A DNA stretch of 64,000 nt from positions 4,898,001-4,962,000 of the forward strand of contig OX337229.1 in NCBI GenBank assembly GCA_946965045.2. The letters are read 5' to 3'. The notes beneath the pieces are model-generated. The model did not search any database, had not been told where the DNA came from, and saw only the letters and a list, made by a program, of their open reading frames with translations. Origin of the DNA: Epithemia pelagica (Eukaryota > Protista > Bacillariophyta). The position numbers were made by a program, and so were the translations under genes. Positions 22,190-33,956 of the stretch are shown one piece after another (position 1 is the first letter of the stretch; the number at the start of each line of letters is the position of its first letter).

Positions 22190-23327
22190 GTCCAAAAAAC
22201 GGCTTTCGTCCGAAAAAAGGTGCACTTCTCTGTGTGACGTACAGACGTCTACAAGAGTTCACATGAAAATTCTTTCCAGGGACATCGAGGCGGACGCGTT
22301 GTGGCAAGGAAAGAAAGGCGGCGGATGATGCACCAACTGTTCCATTCGACCATGACATGATAAGCAAGGAGAAAAGAAAAGCCAGAGAGTTGGTGTGATA
22401 CGAACTCGTTTTCGTGGTGACTGGGATTTGCTCAAAACCAAACGACGAAACCAAATAATTGAACATTATTTTTTTTGCGATGTTATGGAACGATGGAGAA
22501 CCATTTTTGTGACAAGCAAGTGACAAGTCGGAAGATCCCGAACGTCAGTCCACGAAACGCGATCTTGTATCTGGTAGTAGGAGTAGCCTATTCTATGTTC
22601 TCTACCTCTGTAGTAGATCTAGCTAGTGGGAGCAGGTAGATTTTTGATCGCACGTAGCACAGCGCCGAAAAGGTCGCGTCAGGCACGTGGCCAGCTTACA
22701 CTTCCGGTCTCAATTACTGACTATACATCAAATTGTACAAGATGCAGAACGGCCAGTGAATTTTGAGTACGCTCCAGTGATCACATCGTGCACGAGAATA
22801 GACTATAAAGTACTTTTGTGAGAAGGCCACCGATGGAGCATGGAAAAAGAAAGAACCGAGCAAAACTCTTTTGGACTTCACGGTATTCGTCGAGTGCTGT
22901 CTTCGTGAACCTGCATGCATCTTCAAAGCTGTCTTCGTAGTACATCTGCACCACACTGCACTGCAAATAAACAACGTATCCAACTCCAACACCTTTACTC
23001 TTTGTCTTGATTCTGTGAAGAGATATTCGTCGACTTGGATTTGCTTGGAGCTTCATCGCAATCCATCAAAGTGGGTATCATTGAAGGCCGGAAACGTACT
23101 GGTTGCTGTGGTGACTGGTGACAGGCGAAGGAGGGACCTTCTTCTTGAGCTATTGACGGAGTATCACATTATATTGGTCGACTTTGTTGCAGTTCCCTGG
23201 ATTTTGATGCCAGAGATATTGCTGTGAAAGAAATTCAAACTTCAACTCTTTTCCTCAACAACTTCGCTGCGTCAATCAAGCGGGGCGATCTCTGTCACTC
23301 CAACAACAGGCACAATAACGAAGCAAC

Positions 23328-25762
23328 ATGTCTCGCCGTCGCGGAGAGTTTGAGCATCGAACATCGATTTTTGAAGGGGCATTTCGTGCCTGGTCTCATT
23401 TGGGTGGCTTACCACCTGAGGATTTGGAATCCAAGCCAACAGCGGATTTGGACCCCTTGACCAGTCCCATTGAGGACGACCCTCGCATTGCGTCACAACG
23501 AAAATCGGGAGAAATCAAAGAAACCAAAAATCCAGATGGCACGACACGTCGTGAATATCCCTACGAACCTCTACCGCGGTCCGGTCTGGCGCATCCCTAT
23601 GTCCAGGCAATCCTCAGTCCGTACGTGTTTGTTGTGCTATCTTCTCAAAGAATTGTCGTTTACTCATATTTTCATGTCTTGTTCAATCACAGATGGTTGG
23701 GCCCTGATGCGGACAATGAAGCAATTCAGCTTGGCTTAACGACCCTTCGAACATGGTGGCAACATCGACGAAAAGGTGAATCTGGCTCTGCGATTGCTGC
23801 ACTGGGAACAGAAAAGATGAAGGGTGTGGTGGAAGGATATACTCGGCATTTCTTTACATTGGCTCACTGTCTTGTGGTGCAGGACAAAGAACAACCGCCT
23901 CGGACATTGCATGGTAGGATGAAGGAACTAGAAAAAGCACGCAACAAACGAGGTAAAAAGAAGACCACCAAAGACGATGACAACAAAGCTTCAATCAATA
24001 TGGCCTCAGCTCCCTCGGACTTGGTTAGCGATATAAAGGGAGACTTGATGGATTCCAACTTGTCGCCGCTGGAACGTTTGCATGCAGCTCAAAGACGGCA
24101 ATTGGCTAGTTCTGGAATGATCCATCCACAAATGCCAGCCACAACTCAGGTGGACATTTCGAATCCCGGTCCTGTTGTTAATCTCAAGGGAAAATGTATA
24201 CCAGGGAAGATAGATTTACCTGGAATGGTAGAACAAGTCAATCATGCCGCCAACCAACTTGCTCACAGAGGTGGCAACGTACCGGTAGTATCCTCCTCGA
24301 GTGCATCGACCCTTACACAAACGCAAGCACCTTCAAATCAATATGGCGATCCGAATACAACACCAGTTGTGTTTGTTTCGAGCAGAGGAGATATCATGAT
24401 TGCAATGGAAATTGATGGAATTACATGCGCTCACTGCGTCAAAATTGTGGAAACGGTGCTGAAAGGCTGCAGTGGCAATAAATCTCCAATCGATGGATTA
24501 CTGGATGCCGCTGCCGATCAGAAGTTGAACGCTGTGTTAATAAGGATTGACAAGGCTAGCAATGCGAAACGAGTTGCCTTTGAATCGGCGCGCAACCTGT
24601 CCATGGTGGGATACACGGCAAAAGTAAAAGAGATGAGTATCGTGGGAGCCACTGCGGACCAAAAGTCCACCATGGACCTCGGATTGCTCAGTACAGCGTT
24701 TGAAGTTGTTGCCAACACAGATCCAAAGGATTTTTTTGACTGGAGAGTTCCCTGCACCTGTCCGGACAATGGAGTCCTTCGGCAAGACTGTGCTCGGTAA
24801 GTATGAGGATGTATCGGGCAAAAAGGCTGGTTTGGGGAATTATATAACTCACAGACTAATCTTTTGATGTCAGTCACGGTCAAATGAACACTCGCATCTT
24901 TGAGGCGTTTGAATCTCGTGAGAAACAGGTTGTCGATTACATGGCTGGTTGTGGTATGAAATACGGCATGCCTTGCACATGCGGTCCTGAGTGCCGTTGT
25001 AAGAATTGTCCCATTCATGGGAACAATGGTAATGGTGGCAGCGATGGCCTAGATGTGAACGAGGAAGCACAAATCCGTGCTGCAGCTGCAATGATGCAAC
25101 AGCAAACTCAAGCACCTCTTGCACCAGCGCCACGCCAACAAGTTCAGCTACAGGTACAACTCCGCGGTACATCGGCGAGTCCATTTGGCATGGACGATGA
25201 TGAGCCAATTCACGTAGAACAAAAAATGGATTTCTTTGGTCTGGAGCCACCAAAAGGTTCCCAACTGGCCGGTCTCGATAGAATGCAACGTGCCCCGTCC
25301 ATGCGACGATCTATGGAAGCGAATAAAGGACAACTTGGTGGTATAGTAGGCTTGCAACAACAGGAACCTCCCGCACAACAGGAACCTCAACCCATTCAAC
25401 ATCTCCCACTCATGGACGAACCAGGAGAACTGGGTCTATCTTCCCCGCACCGCCGTTCATCACAACGAAATCCATCAATCATATCATATGGTGGTCTTCG
25501 TCATATGTCAATGAATTCAGAAACGACTTTTGGTCGGGCAATGTCCGGACTCTCCGCACTCTCAATTGACTGGGAAAATTTGGAGGATTTTGATTTGGAA
25601 GTGGATCATAGCGCTCACATCAACAATAGCCAGATTGGCAACAAAATGGGAGGTGGAGGTATGGATCCTTCCATGAACGGGGGTCGACGATCAAGCTTTC
25701 GGAGACCTCATCACCCAGGAGCACACAATCCCGACAAAGAGCATGTGTCATTTGAAGTCTAG
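23328..25762 (+). CDS. Heavy-metal-associated (HMA) domain protein with a Cys/His cluster and Q-rich tail, 3 exons
   Basis: Introns 23621-23692 and 24797-24873. Motifs MEIDGITCAHCVKIVETVL, CTCPDNGVLRQDCARH, CGMKYGMPCTCGPECRCKNCPIH. Confidence 0.8.
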
Positions 25763-26182
25763 AGAGATGATGATTTGGACGAGTCATCTGTTGAAGTGTT
25801 TACATGTCAGAAACAATGGCTTGGGGCTCACAAGACAAAACAACTCCTGCCAGATATATTTTGCAGCAACAATCACTGTCAGGCAATCAGTTGCATCTTC
25901 TCGAGTTGTCGAAGTAGTGCATATTCATTTATAACTTAGGGGATGTGATTGACTATTTCTGTGTTGTCCTTTCCTAGCATCTGAGGCTAGGACGACTACA
26001 ATATTGGATCCGCAATGGATTGGCTCCTTGTCCGACATTTTGACAAAAGCATTTGCGTTTGCCCTGCCAAGAATATGTTCGACAAATCTCCCTGGACAAA
26101 TAATGCATCTCAGTGATGAACACCGTCGGAGCGAGCATATCTCAAAAGTTAAAGAAGAAACGACCGAAGAGTACAAGAGGAT

Positions 26183-27205: not shown

Positions 27206-27932
27206 ATGGGTGTAAGTCTGCCAAGGAGGCATGATAGGATCAATTTCTGCTTTCGGTTTCACGATGCCCATCATATTCTTTGTTTATCCGTATGCTGGCA
27301 ATGAGGGTTGGGAGAATCTTCACACGTGTCCGATGCGACATATCTTTCACAGCGGGTGAAGAGGATCGGCAGCACCATTCCGTATTTTGTTTTCGCGTTG
27401 CACATCATGTCAATTCTCACCGGTCTCCTGTCTTTCTGTTTTCTGTGTGATACAGCGTGCACGACGTGGAGGAGGCATGGGACGCCGCCCAGCACCGGCT
27501 CGTCCGGCACCATCGAAACCAGCCGCTCGTCCAGCTTCCACTCAAGCGGCCCCTACGCCGCAACAACCCCAGACCAGTGTTCCTGCTGTCCAACAACCCC
27601 AATCAGGAGGAATGTTGTCGTCAATCGGTAGCACCATTGCACAAGGAATGGCCTTTGGAACCGGAAGTGCCATTGCTCACCGTGCCGTCGGTGCCGCTTC
27701 GGACAGTTTGTTTGGAGGCAGCTCCGACAAGCAAGCTGCTCCTGAGTATGCTCAAGGTGCCATGGAGCAACAACCCGTGGCTGCTTCGAACATGATGGAC
27801 ACTGGTGCTTGCGCTGCCGATAAACAATTGTACTACGACTGCATCAAAGACAACCGTGACGACCAAGTTGTCTGCCAGTTCCTCTTGGACCAGCTCAAGT
27901 CGTGCCAGCAGAATCAAATGTACAGTGGATAA
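27206..27932 (+). CDS. CHCHD2/CHCHD10/Mix17-like mitochondrial twin CX9C protein, 2 exons
   Basis: ATGGGT, intron 27212-27455, then RARRGGG.., GGMLSSIGSTIAQGMAFGTGSAIAHRAV, and CX9C-X9-CX9C at the C-terminus. Confidence 0.88.
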
Positions 27933-28752: not shown

Positions 28753-31700
28753 TCACACACGGTAAGGGATGAGACGCCTGATATTGATGCGCTCGGTAAC
28801 GTGGGGACCACGTTGAATGGTCACAGTGCCATTGGAATGGACACGCGTGATAGTGAAAGGATTGGGACTGGTACGAAGTGCCAATTTGTCCGGATTGGTA
28901 GCGCGGATAAGCACGCGATCTCCAATTTTGTAGTCATGAAAGACGCGAGAGCGATTTGCGAGTCGAGCTCGTTCGTCCACGATGATTTGGCGTTTTTGAC
29001 GAATCAATTCCATGTCCGCAAGGATGGGAATGTCGAACAGCATGTCGCGGTGGAACGCAAGACTGCCGGGAGAATGTTTGAGGCTGCCGTGGATGGCAGT
29101 GCGTGCAGAGTATGCAGCGGTTTGCAGAGCAGTGTCAACCATAAGAGCGGCCTGTTCAATGTTGTGCGGCGGCTCGTAGTTAACGATAGCGCGTAATGAA
29201 TTGCCAATCGTCAGATGAAGACGTTCACATAGGGCATTGGATTGTGGATTTTTGACCGTTAGGGGCACTGGCTTGATACCATGATTGCGAAGCACTTGCG
29301 TAAACGCATGGCCGATAAACTCGCCGCCTTGATCAAAAAGGCAACGAACAGGGCGAGGATAGCGTGAAAGCCATGAATTCTCGAGTTGGAGACCAACATG
29401 TCGAGCGGTTTTATCGTATATGCGGATAATCTCGCAGAAATTGGTGACAGTGTCAATGACCGTCAGAGCTTGAAAGGTCAGGGCCATGCCATGGACTTTG
29501 ACTGTCCAGGGGCCGATAAGATCGACGGCAATGTCGGACCAGGGATTACCACGGACCTCACGAGGAGGCAATTCTCCGTAATGTCGATGAACGACCTTCG
29601 ACCGTTGACAGGTCGGACAGCTGGAAACAGCTTGATCGCAGTAGAGTCCCAATTGGGGATGCGTCATGTGCATGGCGATAGTATCGCGGAGTCGCGTGGA
29701 ACCAGCGTGGTTAAGCACGAGATGATACCAGTTGACTGTATGCGCGAGAAGCGAGTCAGGAATGCGAATGCGCCAGAGGGCATTAACCGATTGTCGATAA
29801 CAGACAAGGTTGTATTGTGGATTTTCCGTAGGAAAGGGTTGCAAATGATAATAGTCAGGTTTGGATTGGACCAACGCCATTAAGGCGGCATCGTTTTGTT
29901 GATGCTGAAATATCGTAGCATAGTCAACCGGTAGGGGTTGGTTGGCCGTAATGGCGGGATGATTAAGATACACATCGATCAACTCTTCGTCCATGAAAAT
30001 AGGGGATTCATGAGAATCCGCGTCACGAGACGCTAAGCGGGGGTCATCATTAGGCGCACGAGGAACCTGAAACACGGAGTGTTTGCCGCTACGATCGAAA
30101 AGGGATCGTGGTCCAGACGAGGGACCGTCGGAAGGGACCTTGGAAGGGACACTCTTCTCCTCCTCTTTTGAAAGAGGGAGACGCGACAACGCGTCGGCGA
30201 TGACGTTATCCTGGCCAGGAATATAATGAAAGATGGGATTGTATTCTTCGAGAAAGAGACGCCAACGAAGGACTCGTTGGGAGTTGAGAGTGGAATAAGT
30301 GAGATTTTTGTGATCGGTATGAATGTGCAAGGCGGCACAGCCAAGCAACATGGAGCGGAACTCCTTGAGGGTTTTGACGATGGAGAGTAACTCCTTTTCC
30401 ATAGTGGTGTAATTCCGCTGAGCGGGGTTGAGCTTGCGTGAGAAATACGCGACAGGGATGTTTTCCTGCATGATAACAGCGCCGAGCTGATAGTCAGACG
30501 CGTCCACAAAGACGTGGAAAGGAATGTTGTGATCTGGATAGCGGATAAACGCATCATGCGCAAGCATGGCTTTAACGTTTTCAAAGGCTTTCTGACATTG
30601 CGGGGACCATTCAAAGGTCTTCTTGCCGGTCAAGGCTGTTAGCGGAGCTAAGTGATGGGATCGCTGAGGATACATGTGACGATAGAAATTAACCATGCCA
30701 ATGAAGGAACGTAGTTCTTTCATGGTGCGAGGAGGCGATAGAGCCAGAATCGCGGAAATCTTTTTCTTCCATGGTCGTAGACCTGTAGGCGTGAGCCAAT
30801 GGCCAAGGAAGTCGGTTTCCTTCACGGCCCATTCACATTTGTGAGGAGTGATAGAAAAGTTCTTGTCTTGAAGACGTTGAAGGACTTTGTTGAGAATCTC
30901 GACATGTTCTTCCCAACTGTCGGAAAAGACGCCGATATCGTCGATGTAGACCTCGACGTGATCGCGAAAGTCAGCGAGGACTTCTTCCATGAGCTCTTGA
31001 CAGAAGTCTGGGGATTGCTTAACTCCCATAGGGAGACGACGATAGCGAAATTTGCCAAAAGGCGTAGTGATAACGCAAAGATTGCTGGAAAACTCGTCGA
31101 GTTTGAAAGTGTGAAAACACATAGAGATGTCAAGTTTTGTAAAATACTTGTAGCCTTTGCGTCGTCGAAGGATATCTTCGATCCGTGGAAAGGGATAGAC
31201 GCGGCGATACATTTGCGCATTAAGCGAACGAAAGTCCGAGATCATTCGGATTCGTCCATCCTTTTTAGGAATGGCGAAATGAGGAGCGGCCCACTCAGTG
31301 GAGCCAACTCGTTCGAGAATGCCGATATCGACAAACCGAAACAATTCCTTTTTAAAGGTGTCATGGATATTGCGAGGGACCGCATAATGACGATGATGAG
31401 CCGGTTTGGCATTGGGCATGAGATCGAGATGCAACTCTTTGTCCGGATAGGCACGCAAGACGCCATCAAAGATGCGCCCGCATTTCAGCCACACACCAAG
31501 AAGATCTTGTTGTTGTGAGGGCGTCAGATGAGTCTGTTGAGCAAGAAGCTCATCGAGATCTGCCTGTTTGTAATTTGAATCGAGCAGGTAATCGTCACCG
31601 AGGACGTCATCATCTGCGAAGAGATCGATGAAATGCGAGACGAACTCATGTTCAGTCGCGAATGAATCGCGGTCGCGCATAGCGACTTCAATGGAGTCCC

Positions 31701-33822
31701 ACGAGGTGATCCCACGATCGAAATCAAGAAGGACGCCCAGACGGCGAAGCAAATCGCGACCGATGATGATATCATAGCGACTGTTGGGAGCATCATAGAT
31801 GTCGACCCATAGGGGATAGGTTACGTGTTTGGTTCGTGAGAACTCTGGGAGAACAATGTCTTCCAGGAGGATTTCGGACACACCGGAACGAGTTCCCATG
31901 GTCGTGTTCACGGAACGGTCGGTAGACCGCGGTATCATGCCTGGTTGAAGGCAACGTGAATGAAGAATCGTCTTGTCGGCGCCTGAGTCGAGCAGGGCAC
32001 GCAAGGGAAGCGTATTTTCAACACCGCCAATATGGCGAGCCATGACGATGGTGAGTGGAACGCATTCAGGCCGAGAAGGCGAATCGAACGAAGGAACATC
32101 ACTAGATGAAGAAAATTGGGAGTAGAACTCATCATAAGACTCTAGGTTATCCAAGTAACCGTTATTGGGATCAATCACCTCGCTTATAAAAGCGTCATCA
32201 CGACATAGAGACGCGGGCGTAAGCAGCGAGACCTCCTTCAGTGGACAGGTCGTAGATGTGGGAAATGTCAATTCCGCGCCCATAGATTTTATTGAGCTGG
32301 TCGATGACCTCGTTGATGGGTGCATCGGGATGGATTGCGCTGCCGGCATAGCCGTTGGCGGGCCAGTTTGGATCTGACATTGCTGCGAGAACAAAATGCC
32401 CAGGTGATGAGTCGGATCGTCAGGAGACGATGAAAAGGAAGATGAAAGGTGAGACGTACCGGGGACCGTCTTTTCAGGATTGCGAAGATCGCTCCACTGC
32501 TGGATTCCCTCGGCATCGACAGGAATGGTAGGAACGCATCCTGGAGGAGGAGCTACGGCAGGAGGATTGGCAGGAACGGCATTCCATCCATTGCCGGCAC
32601 CAGCAGAGTCAGAGGCGTGTTGATCATTGCCACGACCTGGGGCAGAAGGACGAGAGCCCCAAGTGGCACGCAGAGGAACGGAAGAGCCACCACGCGGGTT
32701 GTTATTGCCATTGGAGGAACCACCACTTTGAGGAGGATTGGTTCCGGCGTTGCCGCCACTGGTAGAACGGGTAGAACGTTGAACCATGACGTCAAAAAGG
32801 CTTTGATTGAAATTGCGACCCGTAGGATTATAAATGCAATCAGCCCAAGAATGGTTGCGATGAGATTCCATCGTGGTCCGATACGGACAGGGATCGGAGT
32901 TGCCATCGGAGGCGCCACGATTGTCTCCGGAGGAGGCATTACGGTCGGAGGAGCCAAGGCGATTTCCGCCACGTGAGGAGTCACGATTGCCACCGCGGAG
33001 TCCACCACGAGAGTGGCGAGAGCGCACGCGACGATCGCGATTGCCGCTGTTGTTGGAGTCGCGAGGACGAGAGCGGTCTTGGCGAGACTGCGAACGATTT
33101 TGTTGTTGCTCACGTAGGAGGGCCTTTTGCTTGGAGGCGCGCTGGTATCCACGAATGGCTTGCAAGAGAGCATCCGTGTCAAAGTGATTGACAATGTCCG
33201 GCACCAAAGGATTGGCTTGTTGAAATTCCGTGCGCCATGTAGTCGGCGAGCCTTGGTAAAAGGCTTGTTTGATTTCGTCTTCCGTGAGGGGGACGATTGC
33301 AGCGTCAGAGCTGAGGTACTTGAGACCATTAGAGAACTTGCGTAGAGACTGCAAATGCGAATCCACAGTCATGTCCGAGGGCTTTCGAGGCCCGGAAAGA
33401 AGGAAGGTGCGGAAAGCACTAACTTCACTGACAAGGACAAGGGGGGCGAAGACCGCAGCAATCAAACCTTGGAAACAGGCTTTATCGAGATTGGTGCCTG
33501 GAGGCAAACCGTTGTAGGCTTCGAGGAAAGGATCAGCGATAGCGCTGGTGACCGAGCGAGGGAAATACTCGCAACAAGCGGCGAAGGGGTCCGGATGACC
33601 GGAGATGCGGATCTTGTCCACGAAGTGGAGGACCCAAAGAAAGAGATCGCGAGGATCTTCATCCGTCGACTCCCGAAATGGGAGGAGGTTGGCGTAATAC
33701 TTGTCGTCTTCATCTTTGAGCTTGAGCAAGGAGAAGGAATCGGAGGACAGAGCCTCATCAACGCGACGTTGGAAGCGGAGTGCATCGACAAGGGTAATGA
33801 ACCCATTAGTGTTGTCTGCCAT
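28753..33822 (-). CDS. Gypsy single-ORF Gag-Pol (Gag, PR, RT, RNase H, IN)
   Basis: LLDSGA (PR), YIDD (RT), DASD...TDHKNL (RNase H), H..NH..CPTC plus VDLIG/FDQGGEF/NALCERLH (IN). Domain order is RT-RH-IN; no chromodomain. Confidence 0.96.
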   Translation of the reverse strand: MADNTNGFITLVDALRFQRRVDEALSSDSFSLLKLKDEDDKYYANLLPFRESTDEDPRDLFLWVLHFVDKIRISGHPDPFAACCEYFPRSVTSAIADPFLEAYNGLPPGTNLDKACFQGLIAAVFAPLVLVSEVSAFRTFLLSGPRKPSDMTVDSHLQSLRKFSNGLKYLSSDAAIVPLTEDEIKQAFYQGSPTTWRTEFQQANPLVPDIVNHFDTDALLQAIRGYQRASKQKALLREQQQNRSQSRQDRSRPRDSNNSGNRDRRVRSRHSRGGLRGGNRDSSRGGNRLGSSDRNASSGDNRGASDGNSDPCPYRTTMESHRNHSWADCIYNPTGRNFNQSLFDVMVQRSTRSTSGGNAGTNPPQSGGSSNGNNNPRGGSSVPLRATWGSRPSAPGRGNDQHASDSAGAGNGWNAVPANPPAVAPPPGCVPTIPVDAEGIQQWSDLRNPEKTVPGTSHLSSSFSSSPDDPTHHLGILFSQQCQIQTGPPTAMPAAQSIPMHPSTRSSTSSIKSMGAELTFPTSTTCPLKEVSLLTPASLCRDDAFISEVIDPNNGYLDNLESYDEFYSQFSSSSDVPSFDSPSRPECVPLTIVMARHIGGVENTLPLRALLDSGADKTILHSRCLQPGMIPRSTDRSVNTTMGTRSGVSEILLEDIVLPEFSRTKHVTYPLWVDIYDAPNSRYDIIIGRDLLRRLGVLLDFDRGITSWDSIEVAMRDRDSFATEHEFVSHFIDLFADDDVLGDDYLLDSNYKQADLDELLAQQTHLTPSQQQDLLGVWLKCGRIFDGVLRAYPDKELHLDLMPNAKPAHHRHYAVPRNIHDTFKKELFRFVDIGILERVGSTEWAAPHFAIPKKDGRIRMISDFRSLNAQMYRRVYPFPRIEDILRRRKGYKYFTKLDISMCFHTFKLDEFSSNLCVITTPFGKFRYRRLPMGVKQSPDFCQELMEEVLADFRDHVEVYIDDIGVFSDSWEEHVEILNKVLQRLQDKNFSITPHKCEWAVKETDFLGHWLTPTGLRPWKKKISAILALSPPRTMKELRSFIGMVNFYRHMYPQRSHHLAPLTALTGKKTFEWSPQCQKAFENVKAMLAHDAFIRYPDHNIPFHVFVDASDYQLGAVIMQENIPVAYFSRKLNPAQRNYTTMEKELLSIVKTLKEFRSMLLGCAALHIHTDHKNLTYSTLNSQRVLRWRLFLEEYNPIFHYIPGQDNVIADALSRLPLSKEEEKSVPSKVPSDGPSSGPRSLFDRSGKHSVFQVPRAPNDDPRLASRDADSHESPIFMDEELIDVYLNHPAITANQPLPVDYATIFQHQQNDAALMALVQSKPDYYHLQPFPTENPQYNLVCYRQSVNALWRIRIPDSLLAHTVNWYHLVLNHAGSTRLRDTIAMHMTHPQLGLYCDQAVSSCPTCQRSKVVHRHYGELPPREVRGNPWSDIAVDLIGPWTVKVHGMALTFQALTVIDTVTNFCEIIRIYDKTARHVGLQLENSWLSRYPRPVRCLFDQGGEFIGHAFTQVLRNHGIKPVPLTVKNPQSNALCERLHLTIGNSLRAIVNYEPPHNIEQAALMVDTALQTAAYSARTAIHGSLKHSPGSLAFHRDMLFDIPILADMELIRQKRQIIVDERARLANRSRVFHDYKIGDRVLIRATNPDKLALRTSPNPFTITRVHSNGTVTIQRGPHVTERINIRRLIPYRV

Positions 33823-33956
33823 GATGGAGAGATGCAATGGTGAGAAAATGAAAGGAAAGGAATCAAAGGACGGGCAAAAGGAATTGCACAAACGTCGGCC
33901 GCCGGAGGCGTGTTATGGTGAAGAAGGAAAAAGGGCGTTGAGGAATCTGATCAGAG

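Follow-up and report, generated by a model that had tools for sequence, protein, structure and literature searches.

Gene structure and transcript evidence

The window analysed here is a stretch of 64,000 nucleotides (nt) from the diatom Epithemia pelagica (contig OX337229.1, positions 4,898,001 to 4,962,000), and all coordinates below are those of the window. The gene under study lies on the forward strand at 23328-25762. Its product combines a helical N-terminal domain, a predicted HMA domain, a Cys3His motif and a Cys/His-rich motif with the spacing of the REP, the copper-sensing motif of the fission yeast factor Cuf1. By analogy with known copper proteins, it is plausibly a good candidate for the copper sensor of diatoms.

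Two long open reading frames (ORFs) in compatible frames, with a canonical GTAAGT..CAG intron between them, were found in this interval, and three exons together give a 2286-nt coding sequence for a protein of 761 amino acids (aa). The features of the gene are as follows.

23012..25955, + strand, mRNA, approximate extent, with a 5′ untranslated region (UTR) of ∼316 nt and a 3′ UTR of ∼190 nt (spliced X7 contig)
23328..23620, + strand, coding exon 1, residues 1-98, first part of the N-terminal domain
23621..23692, + strand, intron 1, 72 nt, GT..AG, in frame and stop-free (skipped in the X7 and X1 contigs)
23693..24796, + strand, coding exon 2 (X7 contig; P0004 is the product of this exon of the window)
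24797..24873, + strand, intron 2, 77 nt, GTAAGT..CAG (skipped in the X7 contig)
24874..25762, + strand, coding exon 3 including the stop codon (X7 contig)

One 2795-nt contig from run X7 matched the window with zero mismatches and skipped exactly 23621-23692 and 24797-24873. Run X7 shares its organism and study with X4 and X5, which carry the locus as near-identical genomic DNA. The contig reaches 188 nt upstream of 23200 and 55 nt beyond 25900, and these contig ends are not mapped transcript ends. Intron 1 was likewise skipped in a contig of an unrelated metatranscriptome (X1). Both are Logan contigs, which establish that the spliced form exists and are silent on expression level and transcript ends. 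Orthologues derived from MMETSP transcripts were uninterrupted over both junctions (...AILSP/WLGPD... and ...DCAR/H.QMN..., with the slash at the splice), the second junction being kept as DCAR/H. The gene is thus real, expressed and spliced as modelled.

The transcript orthologues lacked intron 1, and most genomic orthologues have an ORF that runs on without a break at this point; the intron therefore seems to have been gained recently, and the closest relative shares it. Since it is in frame and stop-free, its retention would add 24 residues to the conserved N-terminal domain and cause no truncation. In the assembly of that relative the gene stands in conserved synteny (CGL160-like, GST, the gene, thioesterase) with an identical three-ORF layout, and the nucleotide similarity of the two loci is 75.6% from the ATG to near the stop. 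The same assembly (ena:ERZ25042306) contains the locus twice, on the megabase-sized contigs ctg3302l and ctg3350l (L002 and L003) with the same neighbours; the two copies may be haplotypes or a large duplication.

Domain architecture of the protein

The features of the encoded protein are listed below in order from the N-terminus.

23328..23924 (including intron 1), + strand, residues 1-175, N-terminal all-helical domain (AlphaFold2 model of orthologue P0001)
23925..23963, + strand, residues 176-188, conserved basic patch, consensus K.R.KRNKKR, resembling a nuclear localization signal (NLS) (conservation)
24375..24635, + strand, residues 326-412, HMA domain, predicted ferredoxin-like beta-alpha-beta-beta-alpha-beta fold (AlphaFold2, Foldseek, VIA-align)
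24417..24437, + strand, residues 340-346, HMA metal site GITCAHC (invariant in the 77-sequence alignment A2)
24753..24877, + strand, residues 452-467, CxCx9Cx2H (Cys3His) motif, split by intron 2 (invariant)
24950..25018, + strand, residues 492-514, REP-like module C-x7-CxCx3CxCx2Cx2H (Cuf1-type spacing)
25022..25456, + strand, residues 516-660, Q-rich, poorly conserved linker with 21 Q (sequence)
25466..25624, + strand, residues 664-716, conserved C-terminal block with the acidic-hydrophobic motif SALSIDWENLEDFD..VDHSAHIN (nearly invariant in orthologues)

An earlier note on this DNA, made from the letters alone, had proposed both introns, a GITCAHC HMA site, the Cys3His element, the REP-type motif, a KRGKKK patch, a Q-rich region and an acidic tail. 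The X7 contig bore out the splicing, the second intron included, and each of these motifs was found at the expected residues.

Conservation was assessed in 36 full-length close orthologues. Invariant or nearly so were residues 1-28 and 77-175 of the N-terminal domain, a short helix LSPLERLHAAQRRQLA, the HMA core GITCAHCVKIVETVLKGC.GNKSPI.GL.DAAAD, the Cys3His stretch FDW...CxCPDNGxxRxDCxRHxQM and the C-terminal block GRAMSGLSALSIDWEN.EDFD..VDHSAHI. By sequence, the N-terminal domain, the HMA site, the Cys3His motif and the acidic tail form the invariant core of the family. The Cuf1-like motif was missing in 12 of the 36. The Cys conservation on which the earlier note depended therefore held for the HMA CxxC and for CxCx9Cx2H, both invariant in orthologues, and failed for the Cuf1-like motif, which is lost in whole lineages.

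The HMA domain

A Pfam search with each exon product gave a sub-threshold HMA match (PF00403) as the sole match, with E 8.8e-4 and 20.1 bits against a gathering cut-off of 24.8, covering profile positions 3-28 only. In a PDB profile search, CopA, CopZ and ATP7B were matched only over strand 1, the following loop and helix 1. AlphaFold2 modelled residues 211-534 of orthologue P0001 (77-sequence alignment, pLDDT 74.5) with a full beta-alpha-beta-beta-alpha-beta unit around the CxxC. Nearly all Foldseek matches of this model were HMA domains (PacS, CopA, CCS domain I, CopZ, ATP7B, MerP, ZntA), with TM by target of 0.7-0.8 and a root-mean-square deviation (rmsd) of 2.3-2.8 Å, and VIA-align gave Z 5.4-7.3 with rmsd 1.6-2.5 Å across 64-75 residues. 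Because the predicted fold, Foldseek and VIA-align agree, we conclude that the model contains a true but divergent HMA domain, as the earlier note had claimed from GITCAHC. A LAMTOR5 profile match to the linker before the HMA domain (E ∼0.05) was rejected as insignificant.

GITCAHC aligned to the GMTCxxC of CopA and CopZ, with the CxxC in the loop that links strand 1 to helix 1. The diatom site GITCAHCVKIVE is close to those of the HMA metallochaperones and P1B-ATPase domains (CopZ, Atx1/Atox1, the metal-binding domains of CopA and ATP7B, CCS domain I), which have the same ferredoxin-like fold and the same position of the CxxC loop. Unlike these proteins, the diatom domain is part of a 761-aa multi-domain protein, scores under the Pfam gathering cut-off, and carries, past helix 1, a conserved insertion of 10 residues (GC-NGNKSPI); the family-specific Cys3His motif comes after the domain.

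The Cys3His motif, the REP-like module and the C-terminal region

The Cys3His motif reads CTCPDNGVLRQDCARH in Epithemia pelagica and needs the second splice, because its His sits in exon 3. It is probably a structural Zn site. The motif CxCx3CxCx2Cx2H follows at residues 500-514 (CTCGPECRCKNCPIH). Five Cys and one His at this fixed spacing are expected by chance at ∼1e-8 per protein of such length, as estimated from typical Cys and His frequencies; given this figure and its recurrence in many orthologues, the motif is beyond chance.

The conserved block after the Q-rich linker contains SGLSALSIDWENLEDFDL. Analogous acidic, Trp-containing C-terminal motifs were present in divergent paralogues. 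No signal peptide or transmembrane segment was seen on inspection of the protein.

The N-terminal domain and the basic patch

The AlphaFold2 model of the N-terminal domain of orthologue P0001 was all-helical, with pLDDT 86.7 and pTM 0.85 (65 sequences). Foldseek against the PDB found no match below E 3 (best E 3.5). With VIA-align against 48,161 chains the best Z was 3.9, far under the level that is meaningful for helical models with this tool, and an ESM Atlas shape search gave TM of at most 0.29. Neither an ESM feature search nor a PDB profile search with the alignment of the domain returned a match. Rap1, the capicua HMG domain and TetR were considered as relatives and rejected as noise (VIA Z ≤3.0). 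The domain is thus a confidently predicted fold without structural relatives in the searches made. This agrees with the unassigned helical domain described in the earlier note; when it was compared with DNA-binding folds, as that note had suggested, it resembled none known.

The N-terminal domain has a near neutral isoelectric point (pI 7.9) and a single Cys in 175 residues, and its first 28 residues were invariant in 65 orthologues. Near-invariance of this domain in all named diatom lineages implies, at the sequence level, a conserved macromolecular partner.

A paralogue, P0186, joins the N-terminal domain to four HA domains (PF03457, E 2.6e-65), which replace the HMA domain and the C-terminal parts; it is a single transcript-sized Logan contig of 3407 nt. 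HA domains may bind nucleic acid, as Pfam suggests. The fusion is a weak hint of a nucleic-acid role for the N-terminal domain.

The basic patch is a putative NLS. It includes KRGKKK at residues 183-188, and K175, K179, R181, K183 and K186 were conserved at ≥90%, so that the patch noticed earlier proved to be conserved in orthologues, as did the acidic tail.

Distribution of the family in diatoms

A word-indexed search with the 490-aa read-through ORF returned 460 homologues (candidate lengths 270-857 aa), the best 120 of which all had E < 1e-179 and 58-88% identity over the aligned part; P0004, the exon 2 product of the window itself, is one of the matches listed. An exhaustive HMMER search with a profile of the N-terminal domain only found 144 proteins among 1.84 billion representatives, 104 of them below 1e-30, and nearly all of these matches start with MSRRRGEFEHRT.

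All members with a taxon name were diatoms, from the early-branching Leptocylindrus to raphid pennates: Entomoneis, Seminavis, two Nitzschia, Cylindrotheca, Detonula, Thalassiosira profunda, T. exigua, Cyclotella cryptica, Attheya, Eucampia, Triceratium and Leptocylindrus danicus. Taxon names cover a minority of members; look-ups of the clusters of divergent members yielded no taxon, and the metagenomic sequences that lack a name possibly include non-diatoms. No named orthologue from P. tricornutum, T. pseudonana or T. oceanica was in either of the two listings of the best 120 matches, which does not imply absence from these species.

Members were annotated as 'hypothetical', 'expressed unknown protein', 'HMA domain-containing protein' or, automatically, 'copper chaperone CopZ'. 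Literature searches found no account of copper sensing in diatoms, no diatom copper regulator, in agreement with the earlier note, and no description of any member of this HMA/REP family; searching by the accession or locus identifiers of six named orthologues gave nothing relevant. The family is uncharacterised, and its combination of an unknown fold, an HMA domain, a Cys3His motif and optional REPs of Cuf1/Mac1 type is new to the literature searched.

Variation of the REP across the family

Among 67 members with enough sequence past the Cys3His motif, 39 had no REP, 25 had one and three had two. REP-A comes after the Cys3His motif, as in the Epithemia pelagica gene, and REP-B lies past the acidic block, both with G-C-x-M-x-Y/G-G in front. 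Both REPs were present in Attheya, in Leptocylindrus (with the Mac1-type x4 spacing) and in some pennates. Neither was present in Eucampia, in Cylindrotheca or in any of the Thalassiosirales examined. In the Thalassiosirales, the Nitzschia/Cylindrotheca clade and Eucampia, which lack the REP, the rest of the protein is nearly invariant. The earlier note had given the Cuf1-like motif a central place; with these losses it is not the conserved heart of the protein.

A maximum-likelihood tree was built from the sequence up to just past the Cys3His motif, with the REP regions left out. Ten REP-less sequences including both Nitzschia formed one clade with support of 100/100, and the well-supported branches force at least four changes of REP state; three very long branches in the tree are unreliable. 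The simplest reading of these sequences is that two REPs were ancestral and were lost several times. The REP would then be under selection where present and dispensable for the core function of the family. Because it is lost in whole lineages, it cannot be the general mechanism of the family.

The early-branching orthologue from Leptocylindrus danicus (P0269 / P0195) carries two REPs with x4 spacing, and in its HMA site (GLSCPHS) the second Cys is gone. As the REPs are kept where the HMA Cys is lost, the sequences suggest that the HMA and REP modules can substitute for each other over evolution.

Comparison with known copper systems

The REP of Schizosaccharomyces pombe Cuf1 is CXCX3CXCX2CX2H and both REPs of Saccharomyces cerevisiae Mac1 are CXCX4CXCX2CX2H, and Cu bound to the Cuf1 REP masks an N-terminal NLS (review, PMC4992176). 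The two spacings given in the earlier note match that review. In Aspergillus nidulans Mac1 the mutated residues C339, C341, C345, C347, C350 and H353 and C470...H484 correspond to REP-I and REP-II, both with x3 spacing (PMC6354809). The five-Cys-one-His spacing of the Epithemia pelagica protein is therefore identical to that of S. pombe Cuf1 and of REP-I and REP-II of A. nidulans Mac1. Mac1 has two REPs, as do some diatom orthologues, and those of Leptocylindrus have the x4 spacing of S. cerevisiae Mac1. Cuf1, Mac1 and the diatom protein also share a basic NLS-like patch N-terminal to the REP and a region resembling an activation domain.

The copper fist (Cys-X2-Cys-X8-Cys-X-His, (R/K)GRP) of the fungal factors gave no Pfam match in the three exon products at E up to 1, as the earlier note had anticipated, and an unrelated 175-residue helical domain stands in its place. 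The diatom protein is therefore not a member of the Mac1/Cuf1 family. Conversely, the HMA domain and the Cys3His knuckle are not found in the fungal factors, and the REP is optional in the diatom family. Since the likeness is confined to a 15-residue motif, convergence is more economical than homology, and the diatom and fungal REPs are best read, from their sequences, as convergent. The diatom protein may, by analogy, work like Cuf1 and Mac1 at the sensing module.

Two other kinds of copper protein were compared. The diatom protein is not a CCS: Pfam gave no Sod_Cu or other domain match, so that no SOD-like domain is present, and the region past the HMA domain is helical with Cys motifs. It is not a metallothionein either, with 14 Cys in 761 aa and no metallothionein match in Pfam. 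The C-terminal Cys domain of plant type 1/2 metallothioneins and the Cys cluster of Drosophila MTF-1 are, like the REP, short CxC-rich stretches able to form polynuclear Cu(I)-thiolate clusters. Metallothioneins differ in spacing, are small and are Cys-rich throughout; MTF-1 has DNA-binding zinc fingers, and the diatom protein has none. The Cys cluster of MTF-1 is reported to be a copper sensor, of independent origin, in a zinc-finger transcription factor (PMC2396432).

Possible function

By analogy, the product is most likely a soluble multi-domain metal-binding protein that would respond to a soft metal, most probably Cu(I). We tentatively favour a nuclear copper-responsive transcriptional regulator or co-regulator, with a probability of about 0.4. 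For both of its independent modules the most similar characterised examples are Cu(I) binders, and outside copper-sensing transcription factors such a REP spacing is not documented. The architecture points the same way: there is a patch resembling an NLS, the linker is long, disordered and rich in Q, the acidic-hydrophobic tail is conserved, and inspection showed neither a targeting signal nor a membrane segment. The extreme conservation of the N-terminal domain implies a conserved macromolecular partner. With its disordered Q-rich region, and with no signal peptide or transmembrane segment on inspection, the protein looks more like a nuclear regulator than like a chaperone.

The metal, the nuclear location, the regulatory role and the following mechanism are what we infer from such analogies. 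The helical N-terminal domain would be the effector or partner-binding part, possibly binding nucleic acid, and the basic helix would act like an NLS. The HMA domain, of the CopZ/Atx1 type with its CxxC, would be loaded with Cu(I). The REP, one in Epithemia pelagica, could hold a Cu(I)-thiolate cluster, and one or two REPs would reinforce the HMA signal where they are present. As in Cuf1 and Mac1, loading with Cu(I) might shift contacts within the molecule and thereby affect how exposed the basic patch is or how active the acidic tail is. The acidic-hydrophobic motif of that tail would be typical of activation domains or partner-docking peptides.

Several points weigh against a copper regulator. 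The copper link rests on analogy, which makes the protein a candidate regulator. The REP is missing in the Thalassiosirales, the Nitzschia/Cylindrotheca clade and others. Some divergent paralogues lack the HMA CxxC (for example GITSAYG, GMVDGHC and GLSCPHS) and retain the Cys3His motif, so the fold can serve without a metal site. HMA domains also bind Zn, Cd or Hg, or act purely in protein interaction, and structural matches to Zn, Cd and Hg HMA domains score equally. The N-terminal domain is near neutral and matches no DNA-binding fold. The REPs of Aspergillus Mac1 are dispensable for the low-copper response (PMC6354809). Of the copper-sensor interpretation put forward in the earlier note, the splicing, the HMA domain, the REP spacing and the lack of a copper fist have stood, and conservation of the Cuf1-like motif throughout the family has not.

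A more ambitious form of the copper-regulator reading is that this gene is a founding member of a diatom-specific class of metalloregulators. In this view Cu(I) at the HMA domain would control the binding of the N-terminal domain to DNA or to the transcription machinery, and convergent REPs, lost in some lineages, would tune the response. The protein would then fill the place of the missing trans-acting copper sensor of diatoms, with copper-transporter promoters as possible targets. We consider this somewhat unlikely.

The strongest alternative, which we judge unlikely, is a factor of the nucleus or cytosol in which the Cys/His sites bind structural Zn, or which senses Zn, Cd, Co or thiol redox instead of copper. 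The HMA domain would then be mainly an interaction module and the REP a dispensable, metallothionein-like appendage. The ligand chemistry of the invariant CxCx9Cx2H is typical of structural Zn, and both the repeated loss of the REP and the paralogues that keep the Cys3His motif without the CxxC are consistent with this alternative. The HMA model also gave similar-scoring matches to ZntA, ZiaA, HMA4, CadA and MerP/NmerA and to the metal-free HMA domains of plants that are bound by effectors. However, the HMA site is invariant as G-I-T-C-A-H-C-V-K-I-V-E in the orthologue group and aligns with the sites of Cu(I) chaperones and ATPases. The Asp beside the first Cys that is the signature of ZntA-type Zn sites is not there. 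The exact spacing of the REP has so far been documented only in copper sensors (PMC4992176).

Copper handling without regulation seems to us quite improbable. Here the protein would be a large metallochaperone, buffer or scaffold that uses its N-terminal domain to pass Cu(I) to a client specific to diatoms, in the way that CCS loads SOD1 using an HMA domain and a CxC motif. The HMA fold does match chaperones and CCS domain I, a metallothionein-like REP could store Cu(I), and the strict conservation of the N-terminal domain could mean docking to a conserved client. Many members are labelled 'copper chaperone CopZ' by the JGI pipelines, but this label is automatic and based on the HMA motif alone. 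The protein is also ten times the size of Atx1 or CopZ, with long disordered Q-rich and acidic segments and an NLS-like patch, and it has no SOD-like or other client-mimicking domain. An artefact of the gene model, or Cys residues clustered by chance, has practically no probability left, since it is refuted by the mismatch-free spliced X7 contig, the 460 homologues and the syntenic orthologue with the same three-ORF layout, and nothing was found in its favour.

Copper both limits and poisons diatoms, to which a large share of ocean primary production is due, and it is linked with iron uptake in these algae and, for some species, with plastocyanin. The family occurs in every named diatom lineage sampled and joins two independent modules of copper type with regulator-like features, which makes it a concrete target for knockout. 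Lineages differ naturally in whether the REP is absent, present or duplicated, which provides ready comparisons for its function.

Neighbouring genes and minor observations

The neighbouring genes (VPS9, PIG-M, CGL160-like and GST on one side; thioesterase, CHCH and a gypsy element on the other) give no functional link. The 5′ UTR (∼316 nt) contains a single upstream ATG, which opens a 6-codon upstream ORF at 23207-23227 (MPEILL), and it could not be aligned to the locus of the relative. Relative to the window, X4 and X5 both carry C>T at 23561, G>A at 25303 and, within intron 1, a deletion of 2 nt at 23672, and X5 alone has an additional T>C at 25855, while the X7 transcript contig has the exact window sequence; these differences are likely allelic or strain variants.

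An ORF at 27387-27932 (+ strand), 1.6 kb downstream of the gene, has a sub-threshold match to the CHCH (twin Cx9C) domain with E 1.1e-5. Some CHCH proteins are mitochondrial copper-relay factors; the proximity of this ORF is probably coincidental. Further downstream, at 28753-33891 (− strand), an uninterrupted ORF of 1712 aa contains protease, reverse transcriptase, RNase H and integrase domains and appears to be an intact retrotransposon of the Ty3/gypsy type.

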